Positions 56,966 through 64,000 of a stretch of 64,000 bases of DNA are shown in pieces; positions within the stretch are counted from its first letter, which is position 1; every line of letters starts with the position of its first letter. Position numbers and translations under genes: made by a program. The notes under the pieces are model-generated. The model was not told the DNA's origin and searched no databases. It saw nothing but the letters and a program-made list of their open reading frames with translations. Where the stretch lies: contig OZ025659.1 in NCBI GenBank assembly GCA_964019335.1, positions 682,001-746,000 of the forward strand. Reading direction: 5' to 3'. Source of the stretch: Diplonema japonicum (lineage: Eukaryota > Protista > Euglenozoa: Diplonemea).

Positions 56966-59908
56966 ATGCCGGGAAAGAAAAAAAAGTCAGGCGCGGATTC
57001 TGTGCAGGTTGCCATCCGTGTGCGACCACATACCTTTACAGATGGCGGTGACAACAGAGACTGTCTGTCGATTGACGACAAGTATGGTGAGGTCTGTGCT
57101 AAGGATCCTGATGGCAAGAGGGCAGAGAAGACTTACGCCTTTGACACTGTCTTCCCGACCACCGCAGAACAGAAAGATGTTTTCGACGCCATCGGCGCAC
57201 CAATGGTCGACACAGTGCTGGACGGGTACAACACCACTTTGTTCACTTACGGTCAAACCGGGTCTGGGAAGACCTACACGATCCAAGGTCTTCCGGGCGC
57301 CGGTGTGCGTATGGGCCAGGACTACGACATCGAGAAGCACAAGGGTCTGACCCCTCGTATCGCAGAATACCTGTTAGAGAAGGTTGGGGAAGTCATTGAA
57401 GAAGACTCCACTGCCAACGCCATGATCGAGATGGCCTACTTGGAAATCTACAACGAGAACGTACGTGACTTGCTGACCCCCAACGGCAAGTCCGAATCCC
57501 TTGAGGTGAGAGAGGACGCCAAGAAGAAGCCCTTCGTGCAGGGCCTCACCTGGAAGAAGACCATCAACTCCGAACAGATTCTGAAGCACTTGTTGCTGGG
57601 CAACACCCGCCGTCAAACTGCCGCCACAAAAATGAACGAGGTCTCCTCAAGATCCCACGGTCTTGTGTCGATCAGGGTGAAGATCAAGTACGACCCCCCC
57701 AATGTCAAGAAGGTATTCTGTTTGTTCCTCTTTTCCCCCCAACATCCAACAGCCCGACACTGAAGGTCTTCTGTACATCGTCGATCTTGCTGGGTCCGAG
57801 CGTCAGGACAAGACTGGTGCCGAAGGCGACACCCTGAACGAGGCCAAGAACATCAACAAGTCGCTTCTCATGCTTGGGCGAGCCATCCACGCCTTCGGTG
57901 AGAAAGGGTATGCCTTCAAGACGTGAGACATGTTACAGGGCAAATGCGCACGTTCCCCTTCGTGATTCCAAGCTGACGAGGCTTCTGAAGGAGTCCTTTG
58001 GTGGGAACTCGAGAACTTGGATGATTGCCACCTGCTCTGCATCCCCGTACAACATGGTGGAGACCAAGTCCACTCTGGACTACGCTGCGAACGCGAAGGT
58101 ATGGTAAACCACGCCAAGCACCACCGCCACAGCTCATCACCAACAACGCAGAACAGAATAGGATGGCCAGGCAGCTCGAGCTGGGCGAGCAGAAGGAACT
58201 TAACATTAAGCTTGAGGCGGAGGTATGCCCCCGTACCGTTGATTCTCAACAATCTGCAGATCGCTGAACTGAATGACAAGCTCGCCAACGCGAATGCGAA
58301 GGCAGAAGCCAAGGCTAAAGCCATGGCCTTGGAGATGGCCAAGGAGGAGAACTCTGTATTCCTTGCTGACATGGACGAGCTGAAGAAGGAGATTGAAAAG
58401 CTGAAGGAAGAGAACCGACAGGCAAAGGAGACAGAGGAGGAGCTGCGACACACCATCGCCAAGGGCCTGAGCTCAGACGTTGCCGACCAGCTGAGGGCAG
58501 AGCTCGACGCCATGAAGGCAGAGAACTCGAAGCTCAAGAAGGAGAACGAGGAGCAAGCAGCGGCCATCGCCAACGGTAAGGGGGCTGGTGTAGCCGCCGG
58601 TGGTGCAGCAGCAGCAGCATCAAGCCAGCACCTCCGCGCACGAAGCCCCACAGGCATGGGGAAGAAGAAGCTCTCGAGACAAATGAATGACCTTCTGGAC
58701 GACCCTCTCGCCACGCCAGAGGAGCGTATCAAGAGTATGCACACACACGCACAACATGTCCACAGGGATGGAGGGCCGTGCTCTTATTGAGTCCGCAGGA
58801 TCCTTCGTGCGCAAGAAGTCCTTCAACGACATGTACCAGCAGGCTACGGTATGCATGGCGCTGAAGCAGAAACAACCAATAGGGTGCTGCTCCTAGGGGC
58901 TCGTGGGGTGCGAATTCCGCCGGCGGGCACAGATACGCGTCTGTGTCTCAGGGGTCAAACGTCGCCGACCTGAATAAGGCAAAGCAGCGTGCCATCGAAA
59001 ATGAAGACTTCACGGAAGCACAGAGGCTCACGGAAGAAATCAAGGCGATGCAGGCGACGCCGAAGGTCTCCCTTGAGGAGCTCATGAATGCCAGGCAGCG
59101 TGCCATTGCATCAGAGGACTTCACAGAGGCGCAGAAGATCCAGGCACAGATCAACTCCCTCAAGATGCAGCAGGGACAGCAGATTGCTTCAACACCGCGT
59201 GAGCCGCAAATGATGGGCATGCCAGGGCACGACGTCTCGCAAACACCAAGGTCGCTGGGTCAGGAGGACCTCACCATGGGGGGCACAAGACAGGTTTGTT
59301 GTTTTTAGATATATTTTATTTCATCAATTACAGGTGTTCATCGGCCGTGCTTCTATCTCGCTACGCTTCTTGGTCCAGGGCAACTCTCCCACCAAGTACT
59401 TCACGCTCCCTTTGGAGGTATGCCTGCTGTCTATACACATCTTCACTAGTACGACTCGGGTATCCGGGTAGACAGCGGTGCCCCACCGCAGCTGCTTGTG
59501 AGCATCTACCAGCTGGACAAGAAGGGGAAGCCTGATGATGGGAGGATGGACTTTGTAGTGCACGTGCTGCAGGCAAAGGGGATCCCTAAGGCATACTGCA
59601 ATGCTGTGCACTGCAAGTACGTGTTCAAGTGGGGTGAGAAGGACTACTACAAGTCCAATGAGGTGAAGATGAGCACTGACCCAGAGTTCGATTACAAGAA
59701 GAGGTACGCCTTCCCCCAGCTTACCGAGCAGCTTTACGGTTGGTTTACATCAGAAAATGTGATGACCTTTGAGGTTATTGGGCTTGGTGCTTCTGGAAAT
59801 TCTGCCCCTGCTGGTGGGCATCACGACCCTATGACTGGTAGCAGTGGGAGCCTTGACCCTAGGGACGCAGGACCCCCTACTGGTCGTAGGTCTGGGCCAT
59901 ACTACTGA
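56966..59908 (+). CDS. Kinesin (N-terminal motor, coiled coil, two UVR-like motifs, C2-like C-terminus); 9 exons, introns 57713-57752, 57908-57938, 58099-58132, 58223-58259, 58735-58765, 58849-58882, 59294-59333, 59418-59449
   Basis: [54 protein letters not shown]. Eight 31-40 nt GT-AG introns chain all segments in frame. Confidence 0.92.
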
Positions 59909-60143
59909 CCAGACCGGGTTTAGTCATTACTATAAAAAATAGCAATACAAGATGAAAATATATAAAACTGCAAACCTTGGACAGTGGATTTTAAGGGGAT
60001 ATGGGGAAAGGTAAAAGGAGTTGGGGAAAAAAGGGAGACGAATGAAAAAAAAATAAATAAAAAAAAAAAGAAAGAAAAAAATGAAGAATCCTTTTTTCCC
60101 CCCTTCTCCCTCCCCCTCTATTCCTTGGCCCTTCCCTTTTTTT

Positions 60144-60182
<39 letters not shown>

Positions 60183-60958
60183 CTGTTTAAAAAAAAGAGA
60201 AAGAAAAAGGTTTTACAAACACCATTGATGTGCGATATATACCTTATTTTAACAAGCAAAAGTTTTTTTTTTTCCCCCGAAATTTCCCTGTTTGGTACTG
60301 TAGATGTGGAGGAGAGGTGATGACTAGTGCTCCGAGAGGGTCGGACTCTTGGAGCCATTTTTTTACTTTTTCTCTCTCTCCTCTCATTTTTTTTTTCAGT
60401 TGCTTTTTTTTTATTTTTTTTTCTTCAGCACTTCCCGCCCCATTCCACTTTTTTGTTTTTTTTCTTACACAGAGAGAACAAAAAGGGGTGAGACGACTAC
60501 TGCCGAAGAAAAACAAAAAGAATTAAAAAAAAAAAGAAAAGTGTGACAAGATATTTAATAAAAACAAACAAAATGCCCCCCCATCCCCAATCCATGTAAC
60601 ACCTCGGGATATATATATATATTTTTTTTCGTTCTACCCCCTTTTTCTCTTTGGGAAAAAAAAAAAAAGCAAAACAAAAAAAGGTACCATAAGGCAAATT
60701 TCTGCTCTCTTCCCGCCCTCCCCTTTTGCTTCCCCCCTCCCACTTTCCACCTCAGAAAAACATGTCTCTCAGAAATGTTCCTTTTTTTTTTCTCCCTCTT
60801 TTTTTTTCGATAAAAAATACGAGAGCCACCACCCCCTTTTTATTTTTTTCCCCAACACCCTTCTTCCCCACTCCCTTCCCGAGATCCCCTCTTTTTTTTT
60901 TGCCGTGTGGTTTTTTTTTCTTCCCCAGAACATAACCAGAGAGAAAAAAAAAAGCAAA

Positions 60959-63304
60959 ATGAATCGTAAAGGGATTGTACAAGAAGTATTCAAACGATGT
61001 GTAGAGGTACCAGACCGCAAGGCAATTGTAACACGCGAGAAAGAATGGAGCTACAAGGGGCTCAAGAGTGAGGTAGAAAGGGTGGGAGAGGAGGTGAGAC
61101 ACATGGTACCGGAAGGGGGTGGGGTGGCGGTGGCAATTGAGGTGGGAAGAAGCGCGCAAATGGTGATTTCGCAGCTTGCTGTATGGTACGCAGGGTGCTG
61201 CTGTGTGATGATCGACAGCAGTTGGCCACGAGCACGTAAAGAAAAAGTCCTCAATGACTGCAAGCCTGCTGCTGTGCTCTGTAAGGCACGCATCACACCC
61301 TACGCCATGCCACTGCCGAACCCTTATCTCTATCTATCTTACACATCAGGCTCCACTGGCGTACCCAAGGCTGTGCTTGTCAGGGAGGACAGTGTCTTGA
61401 ACACCCTGGACACCGTCACCTCCCTCCTCCCTCCCATCCCTCCTCGTGGTGTCACGCTCCTTGCCGTCTCGCCCGAGACCTTTGACATTTCATACCTGGA
61501 GCTCTACCTGCCCCTTCTTGTTGGGGGAACAGTTGCGATCCACGTCCCTTCTGAATCCCCCCTGGTAGCAGACATCCAGAGGTACACTCCATGGGCCCTC
61601 CAAGCCACCCCTGCCACATGGCAGCTCCTTCTCGCAGCAGGGTGGGACCCCCTCACACTCCCTAGTACCCGTCTTGTCGGCGGCGAGACCTTTCCTCCCT
61701 CCCTTGCCGCCTCTTTGGTGCAGCACAACAGCATCGTGTTGAACCTCTACGGGCCTACCGAAACCACCATCTGGGTCAGTTCGCACAAGCTGCGCACAAG
61801 CTCATACAAAGAGGGCGTTCCTATCGGGGACCCGTTTCCCGGGAACACGTTCACGCTCACACCGCAGCCTGGCGGTGGGACGTCCTTCCTCACTGTGCGT
61901 GGCGTCAATGTTGCTGAAGGTTACCTACACGGACAGTCCTTTGAAGGGAGCTACAACACAGGGGACACGTTCGTAGAAACAGCAGAGGGCCTTGTGTTCA
62001 AAGGGAGAAAGGACTCACAGGTTAAAGTGCGAGGGAACAGAATAGAGCTGGGTGGTATTGAGAGCCATGCGCTAGCGGTCGATGGTGTGCAGCAGGCTGT
62101 GGCTGTGGTACAGGGCGACAGTAGTGAAGCGAGAATCGTACTCTATGTGACCCCAGAGGTGGAAAAGAAAGTAGTTATGGCCCACCTTGCTGCGTCCCTA
62201 CCTCAGTACATGCTCCCGACTCTGGTACACGCAGTGGACTCCCTCCCCTTGAATCCAAGCACAGGCAAGGTTGACCGCTCTGCTCTCCCTGACGTGGAGG
62301 ATGCCTACAAAGCTCCCGCTGGGACGTCCCTCCCTGACATCGTGCAGGGTCTTGTCTCAGATCTGCTCGACGCACCTGATTTTCCTTGGGACGCACCACT
62401 GCACCCTACATTGGACTCCATCAGCATCATTATCTTATGTGAACGGCTGGAAAAGCAATTCCTAAAGCTCAATATCGGTGACTGGCACGGGATCAGCGAC
62501 GGTGTGCCCGTGGTGTTAGCTGCGACATCTATCGATGACCTCTGCGGCAAGCTGTGCGGAGCTGTGCCGGAACTAGCTCAGTATAACAGGCGAGGGACGA
62601 AGAAGAAGAAGGCAGGGACCAAAAAGCAAACACCACCCTTGATCGATGCCTGCAAGGCAGGCGATGTAGCGACAGTCACAGAGCTGCTTGCGGGCGGTGA
62701 ATGCATAGAGAGTGCCGACAGGTTTGGGTCGACTGCCATACACTACGCAGCTGGGGCGGGGCATCTGGAGCTGTGCATGCTGCTGGTAGCGAAAGGCGCT
62801 GATGACAGGGTGCCTGATAAAAAAAGTGGGCGGACCACGCTGCACTGGGCAGCTCGCCAGGGGAAGACCGATGTCTGCAGGTGGCTGGTCGAGGACAGAG
62901 AACACGGTGTAGAGGTGAGAGCCAAGGACGACACCACACCTTTGCAACTCGCTGCATGGGGAGGGCACATCGAGACGTGTAAATGGCTAATGACGCAGTC
63001 AGCAAACGTCATGTTTATCAACAAGTGGGGGTGCACTGCTGTGCACTTTGCCTCACTCGCAGGAGAGCTCGACACCTGCAAGTGGCTGCACTCTTTAAGC
63101 CTCGACCTTTCACACGCCAATTACCAAGGTCACAACGCACTTCATAAAGCTGCGTACGGGGGGCACAGGGAGCTGTGTGAATGGCTGCACACCGGACCCC
63201 CTTCAATACCCATCACAGCTGACGTCAGGGACCAGCTCCCTTCAAGACTGGCTGCAAAAGCAGGACACGCAGAGCTTTCAGCCTGGTTATTGTCATTAGA
63301 ATAG
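60959..63304 (+). CDS. Stand-alone NRPS-like protein: adenylation domain (Gly code), carrier (T) domain, 7 ankyrin repeats
   Basis: A-domain cores YTSGSTGVPK, FDIS, NLYGPTE, YNTGD, GRKDSQVKVRGNRIELG, LPQYMLP, TGKVDR. Carrier Ser in LDSIS (62417-62419). Ankyrins TAIHYAA, TTLHWAA, TPLQLAA, TAVHFAS, NALHKAA. Confidence 0.9.
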   Translation: MNRKGIVQEVFKRCVEVPDRKAIVTREKEWSYKGLKSEVERVGEEVRHMVPEGGGVAVAIEVGRSAQMVISQLAVWYAGCCCVMIDSSWPRARKEKVLNDCKPAAVLCKARITPYAMPLPNPYLYLSYTSGSTGVPKAVLVREDSVLNTLDTVTSLLPPIPPRGVTLLAVSPETFDISYLELYLPLLVGGTVAIHVPSESPLVADIQRYTPWALQATPATWQLLLAAGWDPLTLPSTRLVGGETFPPSLAASLVQHNSIVLNLYGPTETTIWVSSHKLRTSSYKEGVPIGDPFPGNTFTLTPQPGGGTSFLTVRGVNVAEGYLHGQSFEGSYNTGDTFVETAEGLVFKGRKDSQVKVRGNRIELGGIESHALAVDGVQQAVAVVQGDSSEARIVLYVTPEVEKKVVMAHLAASLPQYMLPTLVHAVDSLPLNPSTGKVDRSALPDVEDAYKAPAGTSLPDIVQGLVSDLLDAPDFPWDAPLHPTLDSISIIILCERLEKQFLKLNIGDWHGISDGVPVVLAATSIDDLCGKLCGAVPELAQYNRRGTKKKKAGTKKQTPPLIDACKAGDVATVTELLAGGECIESADRFGSTAIHYAAGAGHLELCMLLVAKGADDRVPDKKSGRTTLHWAARQGKTDVCRWLVEDREHGVEVRAKDDTTPLQLAAWGGHIETCKWLMTQSANVMFINKWGCTAVHFASLAGELDTCKWLHSLSLDLSHANYQGHNALHKAAYGGHRELCEWLHTGPPSIPITADVRDQLPSRLAAKAGHAELSAWLLSLE

Positions 63305-63349
63305 TTTATTTAAAACTGATGCAGCTTGTTTACCACACTGCAGGGATGA

Positions 63350-64000
63350 ATGGCGACTAGTGATGCAGAATGCAAGTGGGTGAGTGGGATACCAGGGCAG
63401 CTGAATAGTGCCCTCGTCGATGGGTTCATGGTCAAGAAGAGCGGGTGCCAGCATAAGTTTCTGACGCACTTTCACGGCGACCACACAACAGGGTTGTACA
63501 AAAGCTTCAATGAAGGTATCATCTATTGCTCGGAAGTGACGAGGAACTTGGTGATTAGCGAGATTGGCGTCGAACCTAAGAGGGTGGTGGCCTTGCCTCT
63601 GGAGAGGGGGCGGGTCATCGAGACGTTGGGCTTGAAGGTAACTCTAATCGACGCGAACCACTGCCCGGGTGCCGTGGTGATACTGTTCGAGTCGATGCGC
63701 CCGCATGCAGCGTTCTTGGGTGTGCATACAGGGGATTTCAGAGCAGGATCACAACTGATTACCAAGATACAGTCTGCTGTTTCCGCCACTAGAGCTGCGA
63801 AGATAGACAAGCTCTGGCTTGACACGACGTACGCACTCCCTCCTGACAAGTGGCGGCTCCCCCCAATGGGTGACACACTGGATGCAGTGAAGAGGGTTTG
63901 CCTTCAGGAGCTGGAGCGTGACAAGAACACCGTATTCGTGATCGGGATGTATACAATAGGTAAGGAAAGGGTCCTCAATGCGGTGGTCGAGGCCACAGGC
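63350..64000 (+). CDS. SNM1: SNM1/Pso2/DCLRE1-family metallo-beta-lactamase/beta-CASP nuclease, 5' part (runs off the window; missing from the ORF track)
   Basis: Manual translation from ATG 63350: VDGF...FLTHFHGDHTTGL...IYCSEVT...DANHCPGAV...HTGDFR...LWLDTTY...YTIGKER. Confidence 0.92.
   Translation, partial: MATSDAECKWVSGIPGQLNSALVDGFMVKKSGCQHKFLTHFHGDHTTGLYKSFNEGIIYCSEVTRNLVISEIGVEPKRVVALPLERGRVIETLGLKVTLIDANHCPGAVVILFESMRPHAAFLGVHTGDFRAGSQLITKIQSAVSATRAAKIDKLWLDTTYALPPDKWRLPPMGDTLDAVKRVCLQELERDKNTVFVIGMYTIGKERVLNAVVEATG

Follow-up and report, generated by a model that had tools for sequence, protein, structure and literature searches.

What does a protist do with a free-standing amino acid-activating module of the nonribosomal peptide synthetase (NRPS) type that is fused to a set of ankyrin repeats? 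The question is raised by a gene of Diplonema japonicum in contig OZ025659.1 of assembly GCA_964019335.1, within a window of 64,000 nucleotides (the whole stretch of DNA analysed, contig positions 682,001 to 746,000 of the forward strand). An uninterrupted open reading frame (ORF) on the plus strand at window positions 60959-63304 (C12:742959-745304 in contig coordinates), with its ATG at 60959 and its stop codon at 63302-63304, encodes a protein of 781 amino acids (aa) that runs from an NRPS adenylation (A) domain through a divergent thiolation, or carrier (T), domain with Ser487 and a lysine-rich linker to seven ankyrin repeats, and no stop or frameshift breaks these parts. A preliminary description of the locus had proposed an intronless A-T protein with seven ankyrin repeats and without condensation (C), thioesterase or reductase (R) domains, and the single ORF, the Pfam matches and an AlphaFold2 (AF2) model bear this out: intronlessness is consistent with the single ORF and with full-length alignment to orthologs, and Condensation (PF00668), Thioesterase (PF00975) and NAD_binding_4 (PF07993) gave no match in the 781-aa protein at Pfam E-values up to 0.01. 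The reading that we favour, at a probability of roughly 55%, is that the protein is a cytosolic stand-alone glycine-loading module whose ankyrins dock the glycyl-S-carrier onto a partner enzyme in trans; the gene itself is a euglenozoan member of a protist architecture that is catalogued and functionally unstudied.

The large N-terminal subdomain of the adenylation domain (aa 1-340, 60959-61978; all parts of the gene are on the plus strand) was recognised by Pfam, TIGR01733, comparison with the Protein Data Bank (PDB) and its motifs, and the small C-terminal subdomain (aa 341-445, 61979-62293) by Pfam AMP-binding_C (PF13193, aa 367-434, 29.6 bits), alignment and fold. Pfam AMP-binding (PF00501) scored 153.8 bits against a cut-off of 29.9. 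The catalytic cores are all intact in the alignment, namely A3 (YTSGSTGVPK), A4 (FDISYLE), A5 (NLYGPTETTIW), A6, A7 (YNTGD), A8 (GRKDSQVKVRGNRIELGGIE, in the small subdomain, also aligned as GRKDSQVKVRG) and A10 (TGKVDR), and the equivalents of Asp235 and Lys517, the residues that contact the alpha-amino and the carboxylate group, are D176 and K437. Nine of the ten specificity residues lie in the large subdomain, the tenth being the A10 lysine K437. Alignment with MAFFT and hmmalign placed D176, I177, L180, Q215, L239, G241, L263, I271, W272 and K437 at the Stachelhaus positions, giving the code DILQLGLIWK, identical to the one that had earlier been read by eye. This exact code occurs in 59 of the 353 bacterial A domains of the matched proteins and DILQ/DIVQ-type codes in 267, and one matched protein bears the source name glycine-[glycyl-carrier protein] ligase. 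The best PDB match of the A domain was LgrA (6mfz, residues 1235-1728, E 4e-63), a stretch that we take to be the second, glycine-activating module of LgrA. Four relatives from other sequences (P0001, P0176, P0261 and P0002, described below) keep a glycine-type code, their variants being DILQLGLIWK, DIVQLGLIWK and DILQLGCIWK. These comparisons support a predicted A domain that is catalytically intact and coded for glycine, and glycine is presumably its actual substrate.

The T domain (aa 455-540, 62321-62578) was assigned because its serine is invariant, its profile matches carrier proteins, its modelled fold is that of a carrier and relatives pass the Pfam threshold. The serine codon (62417-62419) closes the motif HPTLDS (62402-62419), an atypical sequence that had nevertheless been put forward as part of a carrier, and fold, profile match and invariance support that assignment. 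In the AF2 model helices at 458-470, 487-503, 511-521 and 525-535 form a four-helix bundle with Ser487 at the N-terminus of helix 2, capping it, and a model of the T domain by itself, with a predicted local distance difference test score (pLDDT) of 83, is likewise a helical bundle with Ser487 at the helix 2 cap. Every one of the 8 family members compared has a serine at the position of Ser487, which lines up with the serine of bacterial peptidyl carrier proteins (PCPs). When the family T-region profile was compared with 80 bacterial PCPs by hhalign, a match of 93.8% probability (E 1.8e-7) was obtained with the serines aligned, and the top Foldseek matches of the T-only model were all acyl carrier proteins or PCPs (e.g., 6rcx_B, probability 0.99, template modelling score 0.73, root-mean-square deviation 2.4 Å), with weak E-values, as is usual at about 80 residues. 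The Pfam PP-binding cut-off was passed by the relative P0002 (27.6 bits) and by a paralog on contig C20 (21.0 bits). The T region is thus supported, by sequence and model, as a real carrier domain despite being missed by Pfam, and Ser487 is a putative phosphopantetheine-attachment site at which modification would be expected. Searches of the genome, which here and below covered the 62.5-Mb assembly (the published D. japonicum genome is 62.30 Mb and still unannotated; PMC13598402), returned two Sfp/AASDHPPT-type phosphopantetheinyl transferase genes (AASDHPPT_N+ACPS), on contigs C43 and C23, as the preliminary description had suggested looking for.

The AF2 model of the full protein (pLDDT 87.7, from a 21-sequence alignment) superposes over about 600 columns, covering A domain and PCP, on holo-EntF, LgrA and PA1221 in the thioester-forming state. 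Beyond the carrier, the lysine-rich linker (aa 541-558, 62579-62632; NRRGTKKKKAGTKKQTPP / RRGTKKKKAGTKK) was delimited by low pLDDT, which falls below 50 at aa 546-554, and by the ortholog alignment; a comparable basic patch stands at the linker position in every ortholog, possibly serving as a flexible tether or as a nuclear-localisation-like patch. The ankyrin repeats (aa 559-781, 62633-63301) were identified by Pfam, whose Ank families span aa 555-750 (Ank_2 148 bits, Ank 90.8 bits), by conservation and by the AF2 model, in which seven helix pairs at aa 560-780, corresponding to seven ankyrin repeats, have pLDDT values of 93-98.

Within the glycine subfamily, conservation along the protein is highest in the ankyrin module. 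Its identity to the orthologs is 60-68% and to P0002 50%, with 31% invariant columns, as compared with 39-46%, 34-38% and 16% for the A domain and 35-40%, 22% and 5% for the T domain. The invariant ankyrin residues at non-consensus positions (R625, W630, R633, W667, F697, H725, N726, K730 and Y733) sit on loop tips and inner helices, the usual places of ligand contact in ankyrins, which argues for one conserved binding partner. The ankyrins are therefore supported, from the pattern of conservation, as a candidate constrained interaction module, and we infer that their ligand would be a partner and not a small molecule. The closest relative of this ankyrin module within the genome is an ankyrin-only protein of 282 aa on contig C75 (C75:146031-146879 = L002:1324-2172), which is 37% identical to it over 215 aa.

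Full-length relatives, presumably from other diplonemids, were found in independent assemblies, with 45-48% identity for P0001 (851 aa), P0176 (827 aa) and P0261 (982 aa). The more distant P0002 (1122 aa, 36% identity) has the A-T-ankyrin order followed by a C-terminal GGACT/AIG2-like domain. Three paralogs in the D. japonicum genome, on contigs C20 (L011:1694-4012, 772 aa, code DPGTSGLVYK), C60 (L012:1597-4182, 861 aa, code DPGTSGVVYK) and C75 (L013:2274-5156, 960 aa, code DPVCTGTGYK), share the order of A, PP-binding and ankyrin parts with the target and these four relatives. These three codes differ from that of the target and are unassigned. The T domains of the paralogs have long inserts between helices 2 and 3, and the C75 paralog may additionally carry an Arm-like repeat; their ankyrin modules have low identity to that of the target and no special likeness to it. 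GGACT/AIG2-like proteins also occur in the genome on their own, as four tandem ORFs of 278-304 aa at C20:235565-241246 on the plus strand and as single copies on C95 and C106. A check of twelve further large ankyrin ORFs of the genome revealed no hidden A or T domain. Beyond the genome, profile and representative family searches were dominated by multi-module bacterial NRPSs, a region-limited family search with T domain and linker gave no match, a metagenome scan returned bacterial glycine A domains only, and an ESM Atlas search with the T-ankyrin part alone returned only generic ankyrins.

A further relative in architecture is a 982-aa protein on contig C84 (C84:217082-220030 = L104:1583-4531, plus strand), in which an FkbH domain (TIGR01686, 207 bits, above cut-off) is followed by PP-binding (aa 567-606) and ankyrin repeats (aa 770-945). 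FkbH enzymes belong to the haloacid dehalogenase family and load a glyceryl unit from a glycolytic acyl phosphate onto carrier proteins. With the A-T-ankyrin proteins this makes two unrelated loading chemistries on the same kind of T-ankyrin cassette, and the paralogs and the FkbH sibling together point to the T-ankyrin part as a likely docking cassette for stand-alone loading modules.

If the favoured reading is right, the A domain would activate glycine to glycyl-AMP and pass it to the T domain of the same protein, onto a phosphopantetheine arm that one of the genome's Sfp/AASDHPPT-type transferases would have attached to Ser487. By docking to a conserved partner enzyme that works in trans, the seven ankyrins would then deliver the glycyl-S-carrier to it, with the flexible basic linker (aa 541-558) giving the carrier its reach. 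The partner could be a component of a polyketide synthase (PKS) or NRPS, or a tailoring or transfer enzyme, for which the glycyl unit would serve as starter or building block, although we can only infer what partner and product would be. A bolder form of the idea, which we consider possible but clearly on the unlikely side, is that T-ankyrin is a protist-wide docking cassette that would plug diverse free-standing loaders (glycine A domains, other A domains, FkbH) through one ankyrin groove into dispersed PKSs and NRPSs, thereby replacing, in eukaryotes, the docking domains and operons of bacteria, with the glycine A-T-ankyrin protein as the loader, long sought, that would supply glycine starters for protist polyketides in trans.

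Several observations weigh against loading of glycine for a partner in trans, some of them in the protein itself and others in its genome. Within the A domain there are two deletions relative to bacterial A domains, one between A2 and A3 and the other between A6 and A7, and TIGR01733, the best NCBIfam model, scored 214.4 bits against a curated cut-off of 317.4, a shortfall in keeping with a eukaryotic clade that is divergent and has these two deletions. These deletions, together with the long branches and the 40% identity to bacterial glycine domains, leave a small chance that the substrate is sarcosine, beta-alanine or alanine instead of glycine, the more so since code prediction was trained on bacterial and fungal modules and may not carry over to a long-branched eukaryotic clade. 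However, all ten pocket residues match those of many bacterial glycine domains and are kept across the orthologs, and the bulky L, I and W of the code would fill the pocket and leave room only for a substrate without a side chain.

In the T domain, Pfam PP-binding (PF00550) scored 12.9 bits (E 0.14), under the gathering cut-off of 20.8, and the motif reads LDS instead of GGxS. An improbable consequence would be that the domain is a degenerate, unmodified relic and the protein an adenylate-forming or glycine-binding enzyme, or a sensor, on an ankyrin scaffold. Besides the sub-threshold Pfam score, a hidden Markov model of bacterial PCPs alone misses the T region of the glycine subfamily and picks up just the paralogs and P0002, and the conservation figures above make this the least conserved folded part of the protein. 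Set against this are the serine kept in 8 of 8 members in line with that of PCPs, the confident carrier-bundle fold, and the fact that P0002 and the C20 paralog clear the Pfam cut-off.

In the genome, the missing partner is the main difficulty. The idea that the ankyrins recruit a partner fared unevenly: the constrained ankyrin module agrees with it, but a trans-acting condensing partner is not evident, since no free-standing C domain was found in the genome, all 21 condensation domains lying inside large ORFs. Eighteen of these are in one giant synthetase on contig C96, one is in a Lys2-type reductase, and proteins on C19 and C107 account for the remaining two, which are half-C domains. No partner enzyme for the ankyrins was identified from the ORFs with condensation domains or from the gene neighbourhood, where an SNM1/DRMBL-type nuclease ORF begins 46 nt past the stop codon; the adjoining gene is thus a DNA-repair nuclease, and euglenozoan gene order carries no functional information. 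To our knowledge no natural product is known from diplonemids, and on the side of expression none of the public sequencing runs searched is on record as RNA; the genome paper lists a poly(A) RNA-seq run (ERR12245577; PMC13598402).

The C96 synthetase (approximately 227,400-292,640, minus strand, loci L003-L007, L009, L019-L022 and L117) is a single frame of 21,455 aa encoding a hybrid PKS-NRPS of lipopeptide type, which starts with an AMP-binding (fatty acyl-AMP ligase-like) domain, T, ketosynthase (KS), acyltransferase (AT) and ketoreductase (KR), and continues with 18 condensation domains accompanied by A and T domains; the A domains of this protein are placed among bacterial A domains of non-glycine type. 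A need of this synthetase for a glycine starter supplied in trans was considered and rejected, as it has its own AMP-binding-T-KS-AT-KR loading part, and this also counts against the favoured reading. The C94 protein, with a C-like head followed by A, T and R domains (C94:66271-71127 = L103:2271-7127, minus strand), was rejected as a trans condensing partner, being a Lys2-type L-aminoadipate-semialdehyde dehydrogenase (TIGR03443 888 bits, code DPRCMVMRAK); its presence implies, from sequence, lysine synthesis via the aminoadipate pathway. The NRPS-like proteins on C19 (L014:2020-7068, 1682 aa) and C107 (L015:35-5890, minus strand, 1951 aa) each have a half condensation domain, an A domain with the code GIWTICLYWK, which is without Asp235, and a T domain, and end in a hexapeptide-repeat-like region in one and a carboxylesterase domain in the other. 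Further carrier-containing ORFs are on C72, C113, C23 and C10.

A rival explanation needs no partner enzyme. The protein could be a self-contained amide synthetase like Ebony, in which an amine or alcohol held in the ankyrin groove attacks the glycyl-S-T thioester and an N-glycyl conjugate is released. In its favour, the family is conserved even though C, thioesterase and R domains are absent; Ebony, an A-T protein with an amine-selecting domain that is not a C domain, is an established precedent, the groove is lined by invariant W, Y, F, R and K, and P0002 carries a domain of the GGACT/AIG2-like family, which acts on gamma-glutamyl-amines. We nevertheless give this explanation little credence, as no ankyrin repeats are known that catalyse an acyl transfer or act as a template for one, the low identity between the ankyrins of the paralogs and the target speaks against it, and the FkbH-T-ankyrin sibling fits generic docking better than a substrate-specific acceptor pocket. 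Most improbable of all is the protein glycylation that the preliminary description had entertained, with the ankyrins recruiting a substrate protein to which the thioester would donate its glycine, a view to which the general protein-binding role of ankyrins and the absent release domain lend themselves, but to which no evidence points: known protein glycylases are ATP-grasp TTLL enzymes and not carrier-dependent or of the ANL type, the FkbH sibling would imply a protein glycerylation that is without precedent, and literature searches gave no support.

The origin of the loading module was approached with a quick maximum-likelihood tree, whose branches are long and for which the tool warned of long-branch joins. 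Outside its own family, the closest relatives of the A domain are bacterial glycine domains, which share about 40% identity with it. The tree unites the four close eukaryotic proteins in a clade with a Shimodaira-Hasegawa-like approximate likelihood ratio test (SH-aLRT) value of 97, and all eight A-T-ankyrin A domains fall on one side of a branch with SH-aLRT 89-90, apart from the assembly-line A domains of the genome, which nest among bacterial non-glycine domains. The claim of a bacterially derived glycine module holds in that its nearest outside relatives are bacterial glycine A domains, but not in that the A-T-ankyrin clade is nested inside no bacterial group in the tree. A bacterial origin of the A domain is plausible from the sequence comparison, while the tree names neither donor nor direction of transfer. 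The ankyrin fusion may have had a single origin: the branch at 89-90 speaks for it, and the long branches and dissimilar ankyrins of the paralogs weaken it.

No characterised A-T-ankyrin enzyme turned up in searches of the literature, in agreement with what had been claimed for this gene. The implied unfamiliarity of the architecture is true only of its function, as the domain order had already been catalogued: 'A-PP-Ank-Ank' and 'A-Ank' genes of Symbiodiniaceae are listed in Suppl. Table S4 of Beedessee et al. 2019 (PMC6361889), and two eukaryote-only clusters of AMP-binding and ankyrin proteins, with 66 and 60 members, are on record in the ESM Atlas, one of them auto-named 'Ligase/ankyrin repeat fused protein family protein'. 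Compared by domain architecture, these protist entries have the same order of AMP-binding, PP-binding and ankyrin parts; in the family of the diplonemid gene the ankyrin module was shown to be the most constrained part. Free-standing A domains of dinoflagellates are predicted for Gly, Trp or Phe, and PKS and NRPS domains that probably act in trans are often fused to HEAT, ankyrin or pentatricopeptide repeats (PMC6361889); ankyrin repeats also occur on FabD-like acyltransferases, and tetratricopeptide repeats on thiolation domains (Williams et al. 2021, PMC8283056). As far as our searches show, the diplonemid gene is the first report of A-T-ankyrin from Euglenozoa.

Among characterised systems, PA1221 (4dg9), PltF/PltL and DltA/DltC resemble the target in combining an A domain and a carrier without a C domain, and they hand the aminoacyl-S-carrier to enzymes in trans; the full AF2 model could be overlaid on both 4dg9 and PltF complexes. 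Unlike the target, these systems are without C-terminal ankyrins, and their partners are encoded next door in an operon. The second module of LgrA (6mfz) and other bacterial glycine modules provide the best A-domain match and the identical code, but they belong to C-A-T assembly lines, whereas the target has no C domain, a divergent T domain and an identity of only about 40%. Lys2 (A-T-R), Ebony (A-T and amine-selecting domain) and AASDH/ACSF4 (A-T and beta-propeller) share with it a single A-T unit followed by a C-terminal domain other than C, and AASDH likewise ends in a repeat scaffold. In the target, however, the C-terminus is ankyrin only, Pfam detecting neither a reductase nor an AANAT-like or propeller domain, and TIGR03443 gave a weak partial match of 68.8 bits, the true Lys2-type gene of the genome being the separate one on C94. 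The FkbH loaders (TIGR01686) are comparable in that the FkbH domain of the C84 protein precedes the same kind of T-ankyrin cassette, which suggests a shared docking logic, and differ in that the target would load by adenylation, an unrelated chemistry.

What is added here to the catalogued architecture is the glycine code across orthologs, the carrier evidence for the odd T domain, the constraint on the ankyrins and the FkbH-T-ankyrin sibling. None of the repeat-fused stand-alone NRPS and PKS pieces of dinoflagellate genomes has an assigned function, and this compact, intron-free gene should express easily and carries clear predictions, namely glycine as substrate, attachment at Ser487 and the ankyrin groove as partner site. 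The diplonemid lineage includes culturable species, and the relative Paradiplonema papillatum is genetically manipulable. If ankyrins do dock loaders on megasynthases, this would show how secondary-metabolite pathways are wired in eukaryotes without gene clusters and could bear on the entry of glycine starter units into protist polyketides; if the docking reading is false, the protein would be an orphan NRPS-like enzyme.

At the locus itself, a polypyrimidine tract read from the sequence at 60780-60928 on the plus strand, terminated by AG about 30 nt 5′ of the ATG, is plausibly a spliced-leader acceptor region, as expected in a euglenozoan gene. Four sequencing runs were compared as Logan contigs, probably of DNA, three of them resembling DNA of the same strain and one, run X1, being a low-depth near relative or strain. 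Ten differences from X1 fall inside the ORF, 8 of them synonymous, which is consistent with purifying selection on the A-T-ankyrin gene. Over the window interval 59800-64000 (4.2 kb) the X1 pieces show 19 single-letter differences, and this run could be used for surveys of the ratio of nonsynonymous to synonymous substitution rates (dN/dS) across the D. japonicum genome. In the intergenic stretch upstream of the gene, at 60364-60504 and 60387-60422, word depth in run X6 exceeds that of the flanks by a factor of about 50, and in X7 by less, with many loose ends; this stretch probably represents a dispersed repeat or an element of low complexity.

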